Sequence record: NC_019407.1
Strand: one strand, 5' to 3'
DNA length: 64,000 nucleotides
Made by a program: the position numbers and the translations under genes
The notes under the pieces: model-generated
Database searches by the model: none
Told to the model about the DNA's origin: nothing
What the model saw: the letters and a program-made list of their open reading frames with translations, nothing else
Shown: positions 45,927-51,304 of the stretch, piece by piece
How the letters are laid out: each line of letters begins with the position of its first letter
Position numbering within the stretch: the first letter of the stretch is position 1

Positions 45927-46703
45927 ATGGCGATCCAGAACCCCCATTCCACCACGCCCGGCACCATGCCGCACCTGACGCCCGGCGAGGTCGGCGTCAA
46001 CAAGGCCGACGACATTCTCTGGTTCCGCTCCCAGGGTCGGCGGGTGCCGATCACCCTGAGCGACCTTACCCGCGCCCCACCTGCGGACGGCTATGTGGGC
46101 GCGCCCCTGGCCCTGGAGGGTGGCGCTCCGGTCTGGAACGTCAAGCTCTTGCCGTCCTCGATCGTCGCCGGCGCGGTCAAGGTCGATCTCCCGCCCGCCG
46201 CCGGCCTGCACGCCGTGCCGAGCGTCCTGCTCCAGGGCCTGGGGGCCGATCGCGCCCTGGCGACTAATGATCTGGACCTCACCCCCTTCTACGTGCGTTC
46301 CGATTCCATCACCCTGACCCATTTGGCGTTCAGCGTCCGCTCGGCTGGCGCGCCGGCCATGCGCGTAGGTATCGTCGACAGTTTCGGCGTCGTCCAGGCC
46401 GATGTCCTGGTCGCCGCGCCGGTCGTGGGCGCCAATGTCGTGGCGCTCTCGCCAGTCCTGACCCTCCAGCGCGGGGTTTATCGCACCATCCTGGCGACGA
46501 CGGGCGCGGTGACGGTGGGGATCGCCACGGGCGCGCGCATGGAGCAGGGCTGGGACATCATCGCCGACGCCCCGTCGTTCATCCACGGCTACAGCGGCAG
46601 CAAGAACACCGCCGGCGGCATCGGGAGCCTGCCGGCCTTGACCCCGCGCCGCGCCGCCGTTCCGGGGCAGGATCACGCCGTCCTCCTGCGCTGGACGGCG
46701 TGA
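45927..46703 (+). CDS. Fibre-associated protein (258 aa)
   Basis: ATG at 45927; PHLTPGEVGVNKADDILWF motif; C-domain resembles the preceding two ORFs. Confidence 0.7.
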   Translation: MAIQNPHSTTPGTMPHLTPGEVGVNKADDILWFRSQGRRVPITLSDLTRAPPADGYVGAPLALEGGAPVWNVKLLPSSIVAGAVKVDLPPAAGLHAVPSVLLQGLGADRALATNDLDLTPFYVRSDSITLTHLAFSVRSAGAPAMRVGIVDSFGVVQADVLVAAPVVGANVVALSPVLTLQRGVYRTILATTGAVTVGIATGARMEQGWDIIADAPSFIHGYSGSKNTAGGIGSLPALTPRRAAVPGQDHAVLLRWTA

Positions 46704-46735
46704 ATCTTGACACTCGGTCCAAATGCGGTTAACCT
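46697..46735 (+). promoter_or_regulatory. GANTC/-35 promoter
   Basis: GGCGTGAATC-TTGACA-N17-TAACCT. Confidence 0.7.
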
Positions 46736-46765
46736 GCGCGCTCATCTGGAGTTTCGAGCGCCATC

Positions 46766-47032
46766 ATGGCCGAGCTTGTCCGCATCTATCACCCCGAGAC
46801 GAACGAGCCGTTCGACGTGATCCCGTCGACCGCCGAACGTCTGCGCCTGGGTCAAGGTCTGGACGGTCTGGTGTGGCTCTCGCAGCCCTTCTCCCGCGCC
46901 GCTGCCGAAGAGCCGGCGCCGGAAGCCCCCAAGGGGCGAGGTCGTAAGCGCGTCGCCGCGCCCGTCTCGGACGAAGCCGAAGACGATGGCTGGCGTGACG
47001 CGCCGACCGAGGACGCTTCCGAAGCCGCGTAA
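46766..47032 (+). CDS. Small acidic protein with GRGRKR (88 aa)
   Basis: SD GGAG; composition like 32627..33010. Confidence 0.7.
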   Translation: MAELVRIYHPETNEPFDVIPSTAERLRLGQGLDGLVWLSQPFSRAAAEEPAPEAPKGRGRKRVAAPVSDEAEDDGWRDAPTEDASEAA

Positions 47033-47076
47033 GGCGCTTCCCCGTCCACTCTGCTGAAATTCGGTCTCAGTCCCAT

Positions 47077-47152
47077 GTCGGTCTAGCTCATGGGGTAGAG
47101 CGGCGGTCTCCAAAACCGCGCGTGGCAGGTTCGAGTCCTGCGACCGGCGCCA
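47077..47152 (+). tRNA. tRNA-Trp(CCA)
   Basis: Cloverleaf, loop CT-CCA-AA, TTCGAGT, encoded CCA. Confidence 0.9.
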
Positions 47153-47157
47153 TTTCC

Positions 47158-47232
47158 GCGTCCATCGTATATGGGTTATTGCTTCGCGTTGCCAACGCGA
47201 CGAACCGGGTTCGAGTCCCGGTGGACGCTCCA
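47158..47232 (+). tRNA. tRNA-Gly(GCC)
   Basis: Loop TT-GCC-AA, U73, CCA. Confidence 0.9.
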
Positions 47233-47238
47233 ATCCAG

Positions 47239-47312
47239 GCGGATATAGCTCAAAGGGAGAGCTACTGCCTTCCAAGCAGAAGATGCGGGTTCGAGCCCCG
47301 CTATCCGCTCCA
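47239..47312 (+). tRNA. tRNA-Gly(TCC)
   Basis: Loop CT-TCC-AA, CCA. Confidence 0.9.
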
Positions 47313-47333
47313 AAATTTTCTTCCACGACAAGC

Positions 47334-47362
47334 TTGACAGCCGTCGAGATTTGTGAGAGCCT
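47334..47362 (+). promoter_or_regulatory. Promoter of the Glu/Asp tRNA unit
   Basis: TTGACA-N17-GAGCCT with TGTG extension, same as at 48129. Confidence 0.7.
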
Positions 47363-47370
47363 CAACCATT

Positions 47371-47433
47371 ATGACGCACCTCCTGACCCGTTACGAACGC
47401 GAGGCCACCGGCCTCGATACCACCACCGCCTAA
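47371..47433 (+). CDS. Leaderless 20-aa leader peptide MTHLLTRYEREATGLDTTTA
   Basis: ATG 8 nt after the -10; contains GAA, GAG and GAT codons; followed by hairpin(s) and TTTT. Confidence 0.5.
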   Translation: MTHLLTRYEREATGLDTTTA

Positions 47434-47467
47434 AAGCGGTTCTGGTAACCGAGGCCTTTTGTCATGT

Positions 47468-47545
47468 GGCCCGGTCGTCTAGCGGTTTGCAGGATTCGTG
47501 ACTTTCAATCACGAGAGCGGAGTTCGAGTCTCCGTCGGGCCTCCA
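47468..47545 (+). tRNA. tRNA-Glu(TTC)
   Basis: Loop CT-TTC-AA, CCA. Confidence 0.9.
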
Positions 47546-47568
47546 CCCCCAAAGCCTCCTCTGAGCTT

Positions 47569-47643
47569 GGTGCGTTCGTATATCGGTCAATACTCCGGAT
47601 TGTCGATCCGGCAAGAGGGGTTCGATTCCCCTACGCACCGCCA
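47569..47643 (+). tRNA. tRNA-Asp(GTC)
   Basis: Loop TT-GTC-GA, G73, CCA. Confidence 0.9.
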
Positions 47644-47654
47644 GGGCTTTCCCA

Positions 47655-47813
47655 ATGCCGCTTCAGTCGGGTTCGAGCGACGCCGTCGTCTCGCACAACA
47701 TCGCCAAGCTGATCGACGAGGGCTACTCCAAGGAGCAGGCCGTGGCGATCGCCCTCTCCCAGGCGCGCAAGCCGCGCCGTCCGAAGGTCTCGCGCGGCTC
47801 GCGCCGGCGCTGA
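47655..47813 (+). CDS. 52-aa basic protein [42 protein letters not shown]...
   Basis: Read by eye; PLxxGxS..NI..QAVAIAL pattern of small phage proteins. Confidence 0.7.
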
Positions 47814-47883
47814 TCTCGCCTCGCTAAAGCACCCCAGGTCCCCGGCCTCGTCGTGAGGCCGGCTGCGGTTGCGCGAGGCTTCC

Positions 47884-48108
47884 ATGACCTTTCTTGATCT
47901 TCGTTCGCAGTCGAGCGCCGCGCTCCTGCGCCATGTGTCTTCCCGATCCCCGATGGCGGAAGCGGCTCGCACCGAGTTGCTGACCCGAGGCCTCGTCCCG
48001 CTCCTCACGCGGCACAACGGCTGGCGCCTCGCCCCGAGCGAGCCCTTTCCGCAGCATCTCATCCCGCGCCCCGATCCGCTCGCGAGGTTCACGTGGCGGG
48101 CGGGATGA
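47884..48108 (+). CDS. Hypothetical protein (74 aa)
   Basis: ATG at 47884 after GAGG. Confidence 0.55.
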   Translation: MTFLDLRSQSSAALLRHVSSRSPMAEAARTELLTRGLVPLLTRHNGWRLAPSEPFPQHLIPRPDPLARFTWRAG

Positions 48109-48128
48109 AGATTTTTCTCACGCCGTGC

Positions 48129-48157
48129 TTGACATCCGTCTGAAGTTGTGAGAGCCT
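48129..48157 (+). promoter_or_regulatory. Promoter of the 14-tRNA sub-operon
   Basis: TTGACA-N17-GAGCCT. Confidence 0.75.
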
Positions 48158-48251
48158 GTCCAACGTCACGGATCACGACACTCCTCGGAGTGCAAAAGCG
48201 CGATCCTTCGTTATTCCCTGGACGCCAGCGGGCGTCCGTTCGAGAGCCATC

Positions 48252-48389
48252 ATGTTCGCCTTGTCGCATAACAGCCTGAGCACGAAAGCCGCCTCCCCGG
48301 CGTCGCTTTCGCTTGCCCTGCTGGCGACGGCCACGAAGCCCTCGACCAAGCCGACCACCTCGGCCTCGCACTCGACGGATCACCTCTAA
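48252..48389 (+). CDS. 45-aa attenuator leader peptide MFALSHNSLSTKAASPASLSLALLATATKPSTKPTTSASHSTDHL
   Basis: 41/45 residues are P, T, K, L, H, A or S, the amino acids of the downstream tRNAs. Confidence 0.85.
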   Translation: MFALSHNSLSTKAASPASLSLALLATATKPSTKPTTSASHSTDHL

Positions 48390-48454
48390 GGTATCCCGTC
48401 TCGGGTGCAGGCCTTGGAGCCGCACCCGCTACCAACATCCTGTTGACCTAGCGC

Positions 48455-48491
48455 AAGGCGGCTCCCAGCAAGGAGACCGCCTTTTCTTTTT
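48455..48491 (+). terminator. Attenuator terminator before tRNA-Pro
   Basis: AAGGCGG-CTCC/GGAG-A-CCGCCTT followed by TTCTTTTT. Confidence 0.85.
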
Positions 48492-48503
48492 CGCGTTGAT
48501 CAT

Positions 48504-48579
48504 CGGGGTGTAGCTCAGTCGGTAGAGCGCTCGGTTCGGGACCGAGAGGCCGTGGGTTCGAGTCCCGCCACCCAGACCA
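48504..48579 (+). tRNA. tRNA-Pro(CGG)
   Basis: C1-G72, A73, loop TT-CGG-GA; G2.A71 mismatch. Confidence 0.9.
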
Positions 48580-48586
48580 ACGCCAT

Positions 48587-48661
48587 CGGGATGTAGCTCA
48601 GCGGTAGAGCGCGCGGCTGGGGGCCGCGAGGCCGCAGGTTCGAGACCTGCCACCCCGACCA
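48587..48661 (+). tRNA. tRNA-Pro(GGG)
   Basis: Loop CT-GGG-GG, CCA. Confidence 0.85.
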
Positions 48662-48666
48662 ACAAT

Positions 48667-48739
48667 GCTGCTGCGCCTGGATCGGCGCCGGCCCCTTGGT
48701 ATGGGGAAGTAGAAGGTTCAATTCCTTCCGGCAGCACCA
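48667..48739 (+). tRNA. tRNA-Thr(GGT), atypical D-arm
   Basis: G1-C72/C2-G71, loop TT-GGT-AT, T-loop TTCAATT; C at position 8. Confidence 0.65.
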
Positions 48740-48744
48740 ACAAC

Positions 48745-48814
48745 GCCGATGCCTCTAGGAGGACACGTCTTTCGTAATGACGTCAGGTGGGTGCGATCCC
48801 CACTTTCGGCTCCA
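48745..48814 (+). tRNA. tRNA-Thr(CGT)-like, reduced D-arm, T-loop TGCGATC
   Basis: G1-C72/C2-G71, U73, loop TT-CGT-AA, CCA; 70 nt. Confidence 0.55.
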
Positions 48815-48849
48815 TCAAGATGATCGAGGAGAGATCAGACGAAACAAAT

Positions 48850-48936
48850 GGATGTGTCACCTCAGTGGCGAGAGGACCGGGCTCTTAATCCGGCAGCGAA
48901 AGCTCATCGTGGGTTCGAGTCCCACCACATCCTCCA
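48850..48936 (+). tRNA. tRNA-Lys(CTT) with long variable arm
   Basis: Loop CT-CTT-AA; V-arm AGC-GAAA-GCT; 87 nt. Confidence 0.85.
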
Positions 48937-48941
48937 ATAAT

Positions 48942-49031
48942 GCACGAGTGACCCGAGCGGCGAAGGGCGTCGACTTTTAATCGACTGGGCGTCCAGCCTC
49001 ACCGAGGGTTCGAGTCCCTCCTCGTGCTCCA
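48942..49031 (+). tRNA. tRNA-Lys(TTT) with long variable arm
   Basis: Loop CT-TTT-AA; 18-nt V region; class II-like D-arm; 90 nt. Confidence 0.85.
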
Positions 49032-49037
49032 AAATGT

Positions 49038-49123
49038 GCGAAAGTGGCGGAACAAGGTAGACGCACCGGTCTCAGGTACCGGCGGCTTCGGTCATGAGGG
49101 TTCGAGTCCCTCCTTTCGTACCA
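49038..49123 (+). tRNA. tRNA-Leu(CAG)
   Basis: Class II cloverleaf, loop CT-CAG-GT. Confidence 0.9.
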
Positions 49124-49130
49124 ACGACAT

Positions 49131-49215
49131 GCCGGTCTGGCGGAAATGGCAGACGCAGTGGCTTCAAGTCCCACCGCCTTCGGGCGTCCCGGTTCGATGC
49201 CGGGGACCGGCACCA
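49131..49215 (+). tRNA. tRNA-Leu(CAA)
   Basis: Loop TT-CAA-GT. Confidence 0.9.
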
Positions 49216-49221
49216 CCATGA

Positions 49222-49309
49222 TGCGAAGTGGCGGAATTTGGTAGACGCACCGGCATGAGAGGCCGGCGCCCTTCGGGGCGTGAGGGTTCGAGTCCCTTCT
49301 TCGCGACCA
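49222..49309 (+). tRNA. tRNA-Leu(GAG)
   Basis: Loop AT-GAG-AG. Confidence 0.85.
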
Positions 49310-49322
49310 AAGACGAGATCAT

Positions 49323-49394
49323 GCCGGCCGGCGCAGGCGCGCGGGGGAGGTTGTGTCCCTCCTTGGCTCAGTTCGATACTGAGGGTCGGTTCCA
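49323..49394 (+). tRNA. tRNA-His(GTG), minimal D-loop, no G-1
   Basis: Loop TT-GTG-TC; 7/5 stems; D-arm GCGC-AGGC-GCGC. Confidence 0.7.
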
Positions 49395-49399
49395 GTTAC

Positions 49400-49470
49400 G
49401 GGGTATGCGCAGGGCGCAGGCATCCTTTGCAAGGAAGTCGGGGTGGGTTCGAGTCCCACATACTCCACCA
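49400..49470 (+). tRNA. tRNA-Ala(TGC), minimal D-arm
   Basis: G3.U70 identity pair, A73, loop TT-TGC-AA. Confidence 0.8.
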
Positions 49471-49474
49471 ATAC

Positions 49475-49562
49475 GGTAGGTTGGCTGAGAGGCCTAAGGC
49501 GCCCGTTTCGAAAACGGGAGAACCGCAAGGTTCCGTGGGTTCGAATCCCACACCTACCTCCA
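49475..49562 (+). tRNA. tRNA-Ser(CGA)
   Basis: Long V-arm, loop TT-CGA-AA; U73. Confidence 0.9.
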
Positions 49563-49566
49563 ACAT

Positions 49567-49654
49567 GGATGTATGGCTGAGAGGCCGAAGGCGCCCGCTT
49601 GGAAAGCGGGTGAACCGCAAGGTTCCGTAGGTTCGAATCCTACTGCATCCGCCA
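49567..49654 (+). tRNA. tRNA-Ser(GGA)
   Basis: Long V-arm, G73. Confidence 0.9.
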
Positions 49655-49658
49655 ACAT

Positions 49659-49745
49659 GGTAGGTGGTTCCGGCCTGGGGCCGGACCCGGTTGCTAACCG
49701 GCCGGAGCCGCAAGGCTTGGGGTTCGATTCCTCCTCCTACCGCCA
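49659..49745 (+). tRNA. tRNA-Ser(GCT) with 8/4 fold and 6-7 bp D-stem
   Basis: 8-bp acceptor (one U.U), 4-bp T-stem, TCCGGC/GCCGGA D-stem, G73. Confidence 0.8.
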
Positions 49746-49753
49746 CTTCGATG

Positions 49754-50008
49754 TTGACACCCGCGACGCGGCCTGTCATACGTCACGACAGAGCGAACAC
49801 CCCCCGGCCGGGTTTGTTGTCATACCGGGTCGTCACGCCCCGTCGGGGCTCTAGTAGCTCTTCGTGTGGAGTTTTCCGCCTCCCTCCCAGACAAGGAGGC
49901 GGACCCAACCAACATCGCGATCTCCCGTGATCGTCGGCGACGGGCGCCGTCAGAGACCTTTGCCTGCGCGGCTCCGCTGCGGCCCTGGTCTCGTCCCGAC
50001 CAAATTTT
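49754..50008 (+). ncRNA. Promoter plus candidate structured non-coding transcript(s) ending in CCA-AATTTTTT
   Basis: TTGACA-N17-CATACG; multiple stems; no convincing ORF. Confidence 0.45.
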
Positions 50009-50021
50009 TTCGTCGTGGTGC

Positions 50022-50050
50022 TTGACACTGCGAAACTGTTCTGCTAGGGT
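50022..50050 (+). promoter_or_regulatory. Promoter of the 12-tRNA sub-operon
   Basis: TTGACA-N17-TAGGGT. Confidence 0.85.
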
Positions 50051-50057
50051 TCACGTC

Positions 50058-50156
50058 ATGAGCAAGACCTATCGTCAATTTGTGCGCCAGATTCAGGTCG
50101 TCCGGAATATCCGGGCGGGCCGCTCGCGCATGGCTGACGAAGGGTTCAGGGACTAG
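50058..50156 (+). CDS. Leaderless 32-aa attenuator peptide MSKTYRQFVRQIQVVRNIRAGRSRMADEGFRD
   Basis: ATG 7 nt after the -10; codons 5-19 are all Y/R/Q/F/V/I/N, matching the downstream tRNAs. Confidence 0.85.
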   Translation: MSKTYRQFVRQIQVVRNIRAGRSRMADEGFRD

Positions 50157-50186
50157 GTCCCACACCACGCTCAACCAGCTTTCGAG

Positions 50187-50223
50187 AGGCCCGCCTGGAA
50201 ACCCCAGGCGGGCCTTTTCTTTT
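50187..50223 (+). terminator. Attenuator terminator before tRNA-Tyr
   Basis: 12-bp AGGCCCGCCTGG/CCAGGCGGGCCT followed by TTTCTTTT. Confidence 0.9.
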
Positions 50224-50258
50224 CCCCCTTTCGATCACGGAGATCGCCAAACAGACAC

Positions 50259-50343
50259 GGATGCTTAAAGCTGGAGGGCTCCAGCCGGGGACTGTAAATC
50301 CCCTCTCTTCGGAGGAGTGGTTCGATCCCACAAGCATCCACCA
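50259..50343 (+). tRNA. tRNA-Tyr(GTA) with 8/4 fold and 6-bp D-stem/4-nt D-loop
   Basis: GGATGCTT/AAGCATCC, GCTGGA-GGGC-TCCAGC, GGGGA-CTGTAAA-TCCCC, GTGG/CCAC, A73. Confidence 0.85.
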
Positions 50344-50348
50344 ACCAC

Positions 50349-50424
50349 GGACTCGTAGCTCAGCAGGTAGAGCGCCGGCTTGAAACCCCGGAGGTCGGAG
50401 GTTCGACTCCTCCCGTTTCCACCA
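50349..50424 (+). tRNA. tRNA-Phe(GAA)
   Basis: Loop TT-GAA-AC; two acceptor mismatches. Confidence 0.85.
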
Positions 50425-50429
50425 ACAAC

Positions 50430-50505
50430 GCCCGATGAGCCAGATGGGAAGGCGCCGCCGTGACATGGCGGGATTGAGAAGGTTCGATTCCTTCATCAGG
50501 CACCA
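50430..50505 (+). tRNA. tRNA-Val(GAC)
   Basis: Loop GT-GAC-AT. Confidence 0.85.
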
Positions 50506-50507
50506 AT

Positions 50508-50583
50508 GCAAGTGTAGCTCAGTTGGTAGAGCAGCGGACCGATAATCCGCCCGTCCCTGGTTCGAGTCCAGGCATTTGCACCA
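50508..50583 (+). tRNA. tRNA-Ile(GAT), C33
   Basis: Loop CC-GAT-AA. Confidence 0.85.
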
Positions 50584-50590
50584 ATTCTGA

Positions 50591-50665
50591 TGTGGCATAG
50601 CTCAGGGGTAGAGCGCGCGCTTGATAAGCGTGAGGTCGGGGGTTCGAAGCCCTCTGCCACTACCA
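50591..50665 (+). tRNA. tRNA-Ile(GAT), second copy
   Basis: Loop TT-GAT-AA; U1.U72 mismatch. Confidence 0.85.
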
Positions 50666-50698
50666 GTTTCCAGGCCGGCGGAGATGCGCCGGACCTGA

Positions 50699-50774
50699 TG
50701 GCGTTTAGCATAGTGGGAGTGCAGGGGTGTCACATACCTCGATCGAACTGGTTCGATTCCAGTAACGCCAACCA
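50699..50774 (+). tRNA. tRNA-Val(CAC)
   Basis: Loop GT-CAC-AT. Confidence 0.85.
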
Positions 50775-50779
50775 AATGT

Positions 50780-50853
50780 TGAGGGTTCGTCTAATGGTAG
50801 GACGGCTGGGTCTGGTCCAGCTAATCTAGGTTCGAGTCCTAGCCCCTCATCCA
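50780..50853 (+). tRNA. tRNA-Gln(CTG)
   Basis: U1-A72, loop GT-CTG-GT. Confidence 0.85.
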
Positions 50854-50860
50854 AGCTTGT

Positions 50861-50934
50861 TCTCGGGTGGTCTAATGGTAAGACATCTGGTTTTGGTCCA
50901 GAGGATTGGGGTTCGATTCCTTGGCCGAGAACCA
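50861..50934 (+). tRNA. tRNA-Gln(TTG)
   Basis: U1-A72, loop TT-TTG-GT. Confidence 0.85.
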
Positions 50935-50949
50935 ACTATTTGAATTTAT

Positions 50950-51024
50950 TCCAGTCAATGCACAAGGTGTGCAGCGGCACTGTTAATGCCTGTGAGCCCG
51001 GTTCGATTCCGGGGTCTGGAGCCA
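50950..51024 (+). tRNA. tRNA-Asn(GTT)
   Basis: U1-A72, G73, loop CT-GTT-AA. Confidence 0.85.
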
Positions 51025-51050
51025 ACATGCCGGCCTCGGCCGGCACATGC

Positions 51051-51133
51051 GCCCTGGTAACCGAGGGGGATTACGAATCCCTTAGTCGTAGCAGGAGTTG
51101 AAAAGGGTGGTTCGAATCCACTCCAGGGTGCCA
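51051..51133 (+). tRNA. tRNA-Arg(ACG)-like lacking a D-arm, with 22-nt extra region
   Basis: 7-bp acceptor, only TAACCGA before the anticodon stem, loop TT-ACG-AA, normal T-arm, CCA. Confidence 0.65.
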
Positions 51134-51140
51134 AATTCAT

Positions 51141-51223
51141 AGCGCGCAGGCCGAGCAGGATCATCGTCAGGCGTCGCCCTCCGAAGGCGAAGAGGCCCGG
51201 TTCGAGTCCGGGGCGCGCTGCCA
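51141..51223 (+). tRNA. tRNA-Arg(CCG) with enlarged D-loop
   Basis: Loop CT-CCG-AA; 17-nt D-loop. Confidence 0.8.
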
Positions 51224-51226
51224 TCC

Positions 51227-51304
51227 GCGCGGGTAGCTCAATGGACCCAGAGCAGCCGTCTTCTACACGGTGGGTTGGGGGTTCGAGTCCCTCCCCGCGC
51301 GCCA
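51227..51304 (+). tRNA. tRNA-Arg(TCT)
   Basis: Loop CT-TCT-AC. Confidence 0.9.

Follow-up and report, generated by a model that had tools for sequence, protein, structure and literature searches.

Transfer RNAs (tRNAs) that divide the 12 pairs of the acceptor/T branch into eight and four (8/4) or nine and three (9/3), in place of the canonical seven and five (7/5), comprise the allo-tRNAs, the (8/4) tRNA-Ser, the (8/4) tRNA-His, the selC* tRNA-Cys and the minor tRNA-Sec (selenocysteine, Sec), and 8/4 and 9/3 tRNAs function in Escherichia coli translation (Mukai et al., 2017, PMC5389517). In the tRNA clusters of alphaproteobacterial phages, the (8/4) tRNA-His coexists with the (8/4) tRNA-Ser, and Ser-type allo-tRNAs carry G73 or U73 as the discriminator base (Mukai et al., 2017). 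No 8/4 tRNA-Tyr is mentioned in the main text of that paper, in a 2020 review of non-canonical tRNAs or in later papers on allo-tRNA engineering, in which Tyr-accepting versions are synthetic. Here, we describe an 85-nt element at 50259-50343 of Caulobacter phage CcrMagneto (JX100812/NC_019407), a phiCbK-like siphophage of the genus Shapirovirus, for which a first-pass annotation had proposed a tRNA-Tyr with an 8/4 fold, listing 8/4 identities (Ser, His, Cys/Sec and allo-tRNAs) that agree with Mukai et al. (2017) and naming none for tyrosine. The window analyzed, 64,000 nucleotides in length, corresponds to bases 1-64000 of the genome, with identical coordinates. We place at roughly 0.8 the probability of the whole explanation, namely that the element is a functional, unannotated tRNA-Tyr(GUA) with an 8/4 cloverleaf, which is charged with tyrosine and used in phage translation.

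Predicted fold and parts of the gene

The element lies inside the CcrMagneto tRNA array (47077-51304), with tRNA-Phe 5 nt downstream. Its plus strand reads, 5′ to 3′, GGAUGCUU / AAA / GCUGGA-GGGC-UCCAGC / C / GGGGA-CUGUAAA-UCCCC, followed by the variable arm and the remaining 3′ half, UCUC-UUCG-GAGG / A / GUGG-UUCGAUC-CCAC / AAGCAUCC / A / CCA, and it is made up of the following parts:

50259-50343, plus strand: whole candidate tRNA-Tyr(GUA) gene, 85 nt including the encoded CCA; the minimum free energy (MFE) structure is a complete cloverleaf
50259-50266, plus strand: 5′ strand of the acceptor stem, GGAUGCUU, pairing with 50332-50339; G1-C72; eight of eight pairs Watson-Crick
50267-50269, plus strand: AAA linker from acceptor to D stem, read from the sequence
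50270-50285, plus strand: D arm, 6-bp stem GCUGGA/UCCAGC with the 4-nt loop GGGC (RNAfold), aligning with the stem and tetraloop of the tRNA-Sec model
50287-50303, plus strand: anticodon arm, 5-bp stem with the loop CUGUAAA; anticodon GUA at 50294-50296, U33 and A37
50304-50316, plus strand: variable arm of 13 nt, 4-bp stem UCUC/GAGG with a UUCG loop, plus a single A 5′ of the T stem (RNAfold)
50317-50331, plus strand: T arm, 4-bp stem GUGG/CCAC with the loop UUCGAUC; all four pairs Watson-Crick
50332-50343, plus strand: 3′ strand of the acceptor stem, AAGCAUCC, then A73 (50340) and CCA (50341-50343), read from the sequence

RNAfold returned the 8/4 cloverleaf as both the MFE and the centroid structure (-36.4 kcal/mol, z = -3.0), and an equally good folding was reached by one in 200 shuffles of 50259-50343. 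Sequence and folding thus agree with each structural element of the first-pass annotation: the 8-bp acceptor, the 4-bp T stem, the 6-bp D stem with its 4-nt loop, the long variable arm, the GUA anticodon, G1-C72 and A73. The general features of a tRNA are likewise present, with a four-arm cloverleaf, a 7-nt anticodon loop containing U33 and a purine at 37, a T loop of the form UUCRA, a 12-pair acceptor/T stack and a discriminator base followed by CCA, which is also encoded at the ends of neighboring tRNAs in the array.

With the canonical class II tRNA-Tyr (7/5), the CcrMagneto gene shares the GUA anticodon, A73, G1-C72, a stemmed variable arm, the UUCGA T loop and the D-loop GG. The canonical molecule, however, has 7 pairs in the acceptor, 5 in the T stem and 3-4 in a D stem that closes a large loop, and in canonical tRNAs the linker between acceptor and D stem is 2 nt (U8 and N9) rather than AAA. 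The 8-pair acceptor, the 6-pair D stem with a 4-nt loop and the long variable arm instead recall tRNA-Sec (RF01852; 8/5). When the element was searched alone against Rfam, tRNA-Sec was indeed the best family, ahead of the general tRNA model, which fits the earlier description of the fold as selenocysteine- or allo-tRNA-like. The full-length match of 42.4 bits falls below the cut-off of 47, though, and the gene differs from tRNA-Sec in its stack of 12 rather than 13 pairs, in GUA rather than UCA and in A73 rather than G73, with no sign of Sec machinery to go with it. The (8/4) tRNA-Ser and the allo-tRNAs share with it the 8/4 split of a 12-pair branch, the long D stem with a tetraloop, the long variable arm and the setting in phage tRNA clusters, alphaproteobacterial phages included. 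From these, the CcrMagneto gene is set apart by A73, by GUA and the other Tyr elements, by a shorter variable stem, by a fixed AAA linker and by its anticodon stem, which has 5 pairs here (the next position is C.U) and 6 in most 8/4 relatives with a GUA anticodon. The (8/4) tRNA-His of alphaproteobacterial phages is a parallel in placing an ordinary amino acid identity on an 8/4 scaffold within phage tRNA clusters, but it has another identity set and no long variable arm. The CcrMagneto gene would therefore combine a known 8/4 scaffold with a tyrosine identity not reported on it in the literature searched, and Tyr would join Ser, His, Cys and Sec among the identities that the scaffold carries.

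The gene has been overlooked by standard tools. ARAGORN makes no call at 50259-50343 in the window, nor on the copies in Rogue, BL10 and phiCbK; it does call tRNA-Tyr in relatives with a 5-bp D stem and a 6-nt loop, the form that the D arm takes in most relatives (with a conserved GG in the loop). Against Rfam, including RF00005, the site gave no match at the gathering threshold, nor did a 4.8-kb search at E<=10. These misses reflect limits of the tools and not the absence of a gene. In the GenBank records of the phiCbK group, no Tyr tRNA is annotated at this site, and the CcrMagneto record lists nothing between a tRNA-Ser (end 49654) and tRNA-Phe (start 50349); the genome paper on phiCbK-like phages states that these phages have no Tyr tRNA. 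The present assignment would correct that account, and because standard finders under-call or misfold 8/4 tRNA-Tyr, the tRNA inventories of large phages are incomplete.

Covariation in a family of 8/4 tRNAs with a GUA anticodon

A 201-nt query around the gene recovered 24 phage records at 96.6-100% identity, together with CcrBL10 at 87%. The gene was extracted from Magneto, Ccr32, phiCbK, BL57, CcrRogue and CcrBL10, and the copies are identical save for the last (closing) pair of the anticodon stem, which is A-U in most and G-C in CcrRogue and CcrBL10, a compensatory change. Base-for-base conservation apart from this pair across the genomes compared, which belong to Shapirovirus and Poindextervirus, indicates that the element is more than a chance fold.

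Elsewhere in the Dolichocephalovirinae, two types of tRNA(GUA) occupy the same position, as the first gene after a leader open reading frame (ORF) and terminator, with Phe or Val next. In the Brevundimonas phages Bajun, Gurke and Kikimora, the gene has the 8/4 architecture in a different sequence (8-bp acceptor, AAA, 5-bp D stem, 4-bp T stem, A73 and CCA). The Bajun and Gurke acceptors are GGGUGGUG/CACCACCC or GGGUGGUU/AACCACCC, with an eighth pair that is G-C in Bajun and U-A in Gurke, and in these Brevundimonas phages the gene is tRNA-Tyr according to the depositors' annotation and to ARAGORN. BLAST from Bajun and from a metagenomic member added Sinorhizobium phage Phosso and Erythrobacter phage vB_EliS-L02, where the 8/4 type is present and unannotated. 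The GUA anticodon is kept in all five relatives reached by BLAST or by array position (Rogue, Bajun, Gurke, Phosso and Erythrobacter L02), and the AAA linker recurs in Bajun, Gurke, Phosso and Erythrobacter L02, which came from BLAST and not from the pattern scan described below.

In the second type of tRNA(GUA), the acceptor is 7 bp long, the 5-bp T stem closes a loop of 8 nt, and the D arm consists of a 4-bp stem and the loop ACGAGUGA, lacking GG. This type is unannotated in all four GenBank records that contain it, and its five members are:

CcrColossus, L008:466-551: second-type tRNA(GUA), discriminator U
CcrPW, L016:18730-18815: second-type tRNA(GUA), discriminator U
CcrSC, L017:15219-15302: second-type tRNA(GUA), discriminator A
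Papperlapapp, L020:7088-7168, minus strand: second-type tRNA(GUA), discriminator A
IMG/VR contig, L012:8196-8279: second-type tRNA(GUA), discriminator A; no annotation and no ARAGORN call

The IMG/VR contig came from searches of that database with the neighboring PhoH-like gene and an exact 31-mer, which otherwise returned the same isolates; the contig carries this 7/5 type.

To look more widely, IMG/VR was scanned with a pattern that fixed GG at positions 1-2, AAAG at 9-12, CTGTAA and GGTTCGA and left pairing unspecified, and at least 118 loci were matched. Among the matches listed, to which the counts on this family refer, 81 are unique, and 61 of these combine a good acceptor core of 7 pairs with the four inner pairs of the T stem, a selection that is neutral between the 8/4 and 7/5 folds. 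Bases 8 and 65 form a Watson-Crick pair in 59 of the 61 (A-U 30, U-A 14, G-C 13 and C-G 2), whereas 10,000 shuffling trials averaged 29 and never exceeded 41. Base 49, the partner of 65 in a 7/5 fold, is A in 57 of 61; because it stays constant whatever base 65 is, this A preceding the T stem does not appear to pair with 65. The carrier loci range from 25 to 49% GC and display 37 different acceptor strands, and most form part of an array of 10-30 tRNA genes; the contigs reach 460 kb in length.

In total, at least 59 distinct IMG/VR sequences encode an 8/4 tRNA(GUA), and 59 of them were aligned with Magneto, Rogue, Bajun, Gurke and Phosso. Across these 64 sequences, the 8/4 structure is 97.4% paired, and the eighth pair (columns 8:75) is formed in 64 of 64 with 33 double changes (A-U 31, U-A 17, G-C 14, C-G 2, for bases 8:65). 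At the 7/5 alternative (columns 59:75), no pair forms in 33 of the 64 sequences, and double changes are absent. RNAalifold, run unaided on the 64 sequences, chose the eighth acceptor pair and the 4-bp T stem, and the sixth (outermost) anticodon-stem pair is standard in 51 of 64, with the five inner pairs kept. The IMG/VR rows of this alignment had been pre-filtered for a pairable 8:65, so the count of 59 in 61 is the one to rely on. On covariation across many sequences, and not on one sequence, the family has the 8-pair acceptor and 4-pair T stem of the 8/4 tRNAs of Mukai et al. (2017).

A covariance model (R1) was then built from the 59 IMG/VR sequences alone, with the query excluded. R1 scores the CcrMagneto gene at 71.7 bits (E ~5e-18), within the range of Phosso (79.2), Gurke (78.3), Erythrobacter L02 (77.9) and Bajun (71.4). 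The next best match is a degenerate second GUA element in Phosso, at 41.8; canonical bacterial tRNA-Tyr reaches 30-32 bits, other tRNAs of the window at most 29 and the Colossus-type genes 20-24. Since R1 gives 71-79 bits to the 8/4 relatives and no more than 42 to everything else, the CcrMagneto gene is a member of a distinct 8/4 tRNA(GUA) family. The first-pass annotation, made from a single sequence, could not have revealed that the gene belongs to this widespread phage family, whose covariation supports the 8/4 fold.

Several points weigh against the reading of the gene as an 8/4 tRNA-Tyr, and some of them favor a near-canonical 7/5 tRNA-Tyr, in which U8 is unpaired and an A49.A65 mismatch is tolerated at the base of a 5-pair T stem. 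Within the phage's own genus, there is no variation with which to test one fold against the other, the difference being a single pair, U8-A65 against A49.A65. In the CcrMagneto gene, this eighth pair is worth just 1 kcal/mol and has a pair probability of 0.82, so that thermodynamics discriminates weakly between the folds and it is the covariation among relatives that supports 8/4. Both folds would be open to about half of the family (29 of 61 among the matches listed, with A at 8, U at 65 and A at 49), and the family alignment derives from a pattern in which the GG, AAAG, CTGTAA and GGTTCGA columns, the anticodon included, are conserved by construction. The sister phages Colossus, CcrPW, CcrSC and Papperlapapp use a 7-bp-acceptor tRNA(GUA) at the same position, and because they do without the 8/4 shape, it is not demanded by the tyrosyl-tRNA synthetase (TyrRS) of the host. 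With regard to identity, A73 and a long variable arm are also compatible with leucine in some bacteria. We nevertheless consider the 7/5 fold unlikely. It leaves an A.A mismatch at 49:65 where the 8/4 fold is perfect, and it would need a 4-nt linker, UAAA, and run the variable arm straight into the T stem, leaving no base unpaired there. Furthermore, 8:65 covaries through all four Watson-Crick combinations as base 49 remains A, and RNAalifold sides with 8/4. Nine other tRNAs of the array, including two Ser, His, two Lys, Leu(CAG) and Arg(ACG), served as a control: they are clearly 7/5, and their base 8 is unable to pair with 65; among the array tRNAs tested, only Tyr and Ser(GCU) deviate from 7/5.

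The same pattern was applied to bacteria, one genome per species, where none of the 65 unique matches listed is 8/4; these are canonical 7/5 tRNA-Tyr, with AAAG inside the D arm, or chance matches. The 85-nt gene also had no match by BLAST against PLSDB plasmids. The distribution suggests that the 8/4 tRNA-Tyr class is mainly viral.

Three observations concern the relatives themselves. The second GUA element of Phosso (L258:4317-4404), also unannotated, combines an acceptor of 8 pairs and a linker of 7 nt with an imperfect T stem, and may be a decaying duplicate. In Erythrobacter phage vB_EliS-L02, ARAGORN reports a permuted transfer-messenger RNA at the end of the tRNA array (L259:3930-4338), the whole of which is unannotated in GenBank. 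In AT-rich IMG/VR arrays with an 8/4 tRNA-Tyr (L021, L030 and others), ARAGORN lists some tRNA-Leu of only 73-74 nt, without a long variable arm, and the Ser(GCU) tRNA is ambiguous between 8/4 and 9/3.

Amino acid identity and the upstream attenuator

The identity set of bacterial TyrRS consists of the GUA anticodon, A73, G1-C72 and a stemmed variable arm, all of which are present in the CcrMagneto gene. Other tRNAs of the phage obey host identity rules: G3.U70 occurs in tRNA-Ala, and the Ser tRNAs combine a 5-bp variable stem with G73 or U73. A further indication comes from the region upstream, which contains two features:

50058-50156, plus strand: leader ORF of 32 codons; codons 5-19 are read by downstream-encoded tRNAs, with TAT first
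50188-50223, plus strand: intrinsic terminator, GGCCCGCCUGG / AAACC / CCAGGCGGGCC followed by a U run, from folding; the phiCbK orthologue is annotated as a rho-independent terminator

Leader codons 5-19 read TAT CGT CAA TTT GTG CGC CAG ATT CAG GTC GTC CGG AAT ATC CGG, and the probability of a 15-codon run of this kind is ~2e-8 for a given run at phage codon usage. All 11 distinct tRNA species downstream have a cognate codon in the leader, provided that the gene at 50259 reads TAT. Were there no Tyr tRNA, TAT would be the sole codon of the run lacking a matching gene. Tyr makes up 3.0% of codons in the long ORFs of the window, and TAT 40% of Tyr codons. The leader ORF is conserved in Rogue, CcrSC, CcrPW, Bajun, Gurke and Papperlapapp, and in each of the relatives examined the run begins with a Tyr codon. 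The first-pass annotation had placed the gene first after an attenuator whose first sensing codon is TAT, which is borne out by its position behind a leader ORF and terminator and by TAT as the earliest leader codon matched by a downstream tRNA.

The layout resembles a classic attenuator with 1:2, 2:3 and 3:4 pairings. The leader segment at 50111-50121 (CCGGGCGGGCC) is close in sequence to the terminator's 3′ arm; by pairing with the 5′ arm it can act as an antiterminator, and an upstream segment at ~50096-50105 can sequester it in turn. The antiterminator (2:3) and terminator (3:4) duplexes have similar calculated energies of -29.5 and -30.5 kcal/mol, respectively, and CcrSC, Bajun and Colossus show coordinated changes in all three segments. 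A simple terminator scan did not detect the hairpin at 50188-50223, which is assigned from folding and the annotation of the phiCbK record. The preceding tRNA block has a comparable leader, gp080 (48252-48389), in which 41 of 44 codons are for the seven amino acids of the 14 following tRNAs (binomial P ~1e-12) and every anticodon of those tRNAs is represented; cross-controls gave 6 of 31 and 2 of 44. Our literature search found no description of attenuators ahead of phage tRNA genes, or of such control for tRNA genes in general, and the arrangement suggests that these phages control the supply of tRNAs by sensing the decoding of the codons that those tRNAs read. The attenuator regions span 50022-50223 and 48252-48495 in the window, and L008:240-400, L018:17515-17675 and L017:15000-15215 in relatives. 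A small ORF at 47371-47433, before Glu and Asp, was considered as a third attenuator and is not claimed, as only three of its 20 codons match.

One challenge to the tyrosine identity is a missense adaptor resembling the allo-tRNAs, that is, an 8/4 class II tRNA charged by the seryl- (or leucyl-) tRNA synthetase that reads Tyr codons, or one that is charged yet unused in translation. A73 is the leucine discriminator in E. coli, and the array also holds a Sec-like tRNA-Ser(GCU) that scores 44 bits on the tRNA-Sec model. Allo-tRNAs of the known 8/4 and 9/3 kinds occur with a wide range of non-Ser anticodons, and E. coli serylates them (Mukai et al., 2017, PMC5389517). Such an adaptor is nonetheless highly improbable here. 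A73 is found in 61 of 61 family members among the matches listed, in place of the G73 or U73 of Ser-type allo-tRNAs, and the variable stem is 4 bp long (~3 bp in most relatives), as opposed to 5 bp in the phage Ser tRNAs. The gene is the sole Tyr-decoding tRNA of these arrays, the leader ORF treats TAT among the codons matched to the operon, and the insertion of Ser at all Tyr codons would harm the phage's own proteins. The case for tyrosine is thus an indirect one. To the remaining view, that the element is tRNA-like without a decoding role (a processing signal, a decaying pseudogene or a regulatory RNA), we give very little credence: although standard tRNA finders reject it, several array neighbors are irregular too and are labeled pseudo-tRNAs in some databases, and some allo-tRNA-UAU species were inactive in translation (Mukai et al., 2017, PMC5389517), the element has four perfect stems with U33, A37, the D-loop GG, the UUCGA T loop, A73 and an encoded CCA, its stem changes across distant phages are solely compensatory, and GUA is kept in the five relatives found by BLAST or array position (in IMG/VR it is fixed by the pattern).

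From the observed sequence, predicted fold, conservation, covariation, family membership and genomic context, we infer that the RNA is transcribed, processed, charged with tyrosine and used in translation. As a functional 8/4 tRNA-Tyr, the gene would be the first of the fourth tRNA block in the array. Transcription would start from the promoter-like TTGACA at ~50022 and pass through the leader-peptide attenuator, producing a polycistronic precursor shared with the Phe, Val, Ile, Gln, Asn and Arg tRNAs, from which the Tyr tRNA would be cut down to its encoded CCA. The normally unpaired U8 would pair with base 65, creating the 8-pair acceptor and 4-pair T stem while preserving the 12-pair acceptor/T stack that EF-Tu and the ribosome gauge. 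The core would be rebuilt around the AAA linker and the long D stem with its tetraloop, as in tRNA-Sec and the allo-tRNAs. Host TyrRS would then charge the molecule by way of A73, G1-C72, the GUA anticodon and the variable arm, and the Tyr-charged tRNA would read UAC and UAU in phage protein synthesis. On the simplest reading, it descends from a lineage of 8/4 class II phage tRNAs whose shape is tolerated as the 12-pair stack stays intact.

It is tentatively hypothesized, at odds that we put somewhat below even, that these genes form a phage-specific class of Tyr tRNA with no cellular counterpart, spread through many large phages from AT-rich metagenomic ones (25-49% GC loci) to GC-rich alphaproteobacterial ones and kept because the rebuilt core differs from that of host tRNA-Tyr; in the phiCbK group, the class would additionally be under feedback control by a leader-peptide attenuator that lists the tRNAs of the operon. 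If this is true, the rebuilt core could matter against host tRNA-targeting nucleases or modification enzymes. The dozens of natural variants provide material for asking how a tRNA with a rebuilt core is accepted by bacterial TyrRS, EF-Tu and the ribosome, and they are of practical interest for the orthogonal Tyr pairs of genetic-code expansion.

Neighboring tRNAs of the array

Six more tRNAs appear neither in the annotation of the CcrMagneto record nor among the ARAGORN calls:

48667-48739: tRNA-Thr(GGU)
48745-48814: tRNA-Thr(CGU)
49323-49394: tRNA-His(GUG), without G-1 and with U73; 7/5 by count
49659-49745: tRNA-Ser(GCU), Sec-like
51051-51133: tRNA-Arg(ACG)
51141-51223: tRNA-Arg(CCG)

With these genes and the candidate tRNA-Tyr, the array would comprise 31 tRNAs for 18 amino acids, and just Met and Cys are absent. 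The acceptor of the tRNA-Ser(GCU) has 8 or 9 pairs (with one U.U mismatch), its T stem has 4 or 3, and its discriminator is G73; its 44 bits on the Rfam tRNA-Sec model lie under the cut-off of 47, and it probably corresponds to the (8/4) tRNA-Ser that Mukai et al. (2017, PMC5389517) reported from alphaproteobacterial phages. Descent of the Tyr gene from the neighboring tRNA-Ser(GGA) was also considered, the two having the first five acceptor bases, GGAUG, in common; five bases were judged too few. A TTGACA -35 box stands before each tRNA block (46708, 47334, 48130 and 50022), followed by unusual -10 regions, two of them with TTGTGAGAGCCT; a scan for the sigma-70 consensus detects none of the four sites (window 46700-50030).

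Long stemmed variable arms in bacteria are normally restricted to Leu, Ser and Tyr tRNAs. In this array, they also occur in both tRNA-Lys (48850-48936, 87 nt; 48942-49031, 90 nt) and in tRNA-Arg(ACG) (83 nt), all of which are 7/5. Finally, the gene at 50950-51024 is called tRNA-Ile(AAT) by ARAGORN and in the CcrBL10 GenBank record, but its anticodon loop, CUGUUAA, makes it tRNA-Asn(GUU).

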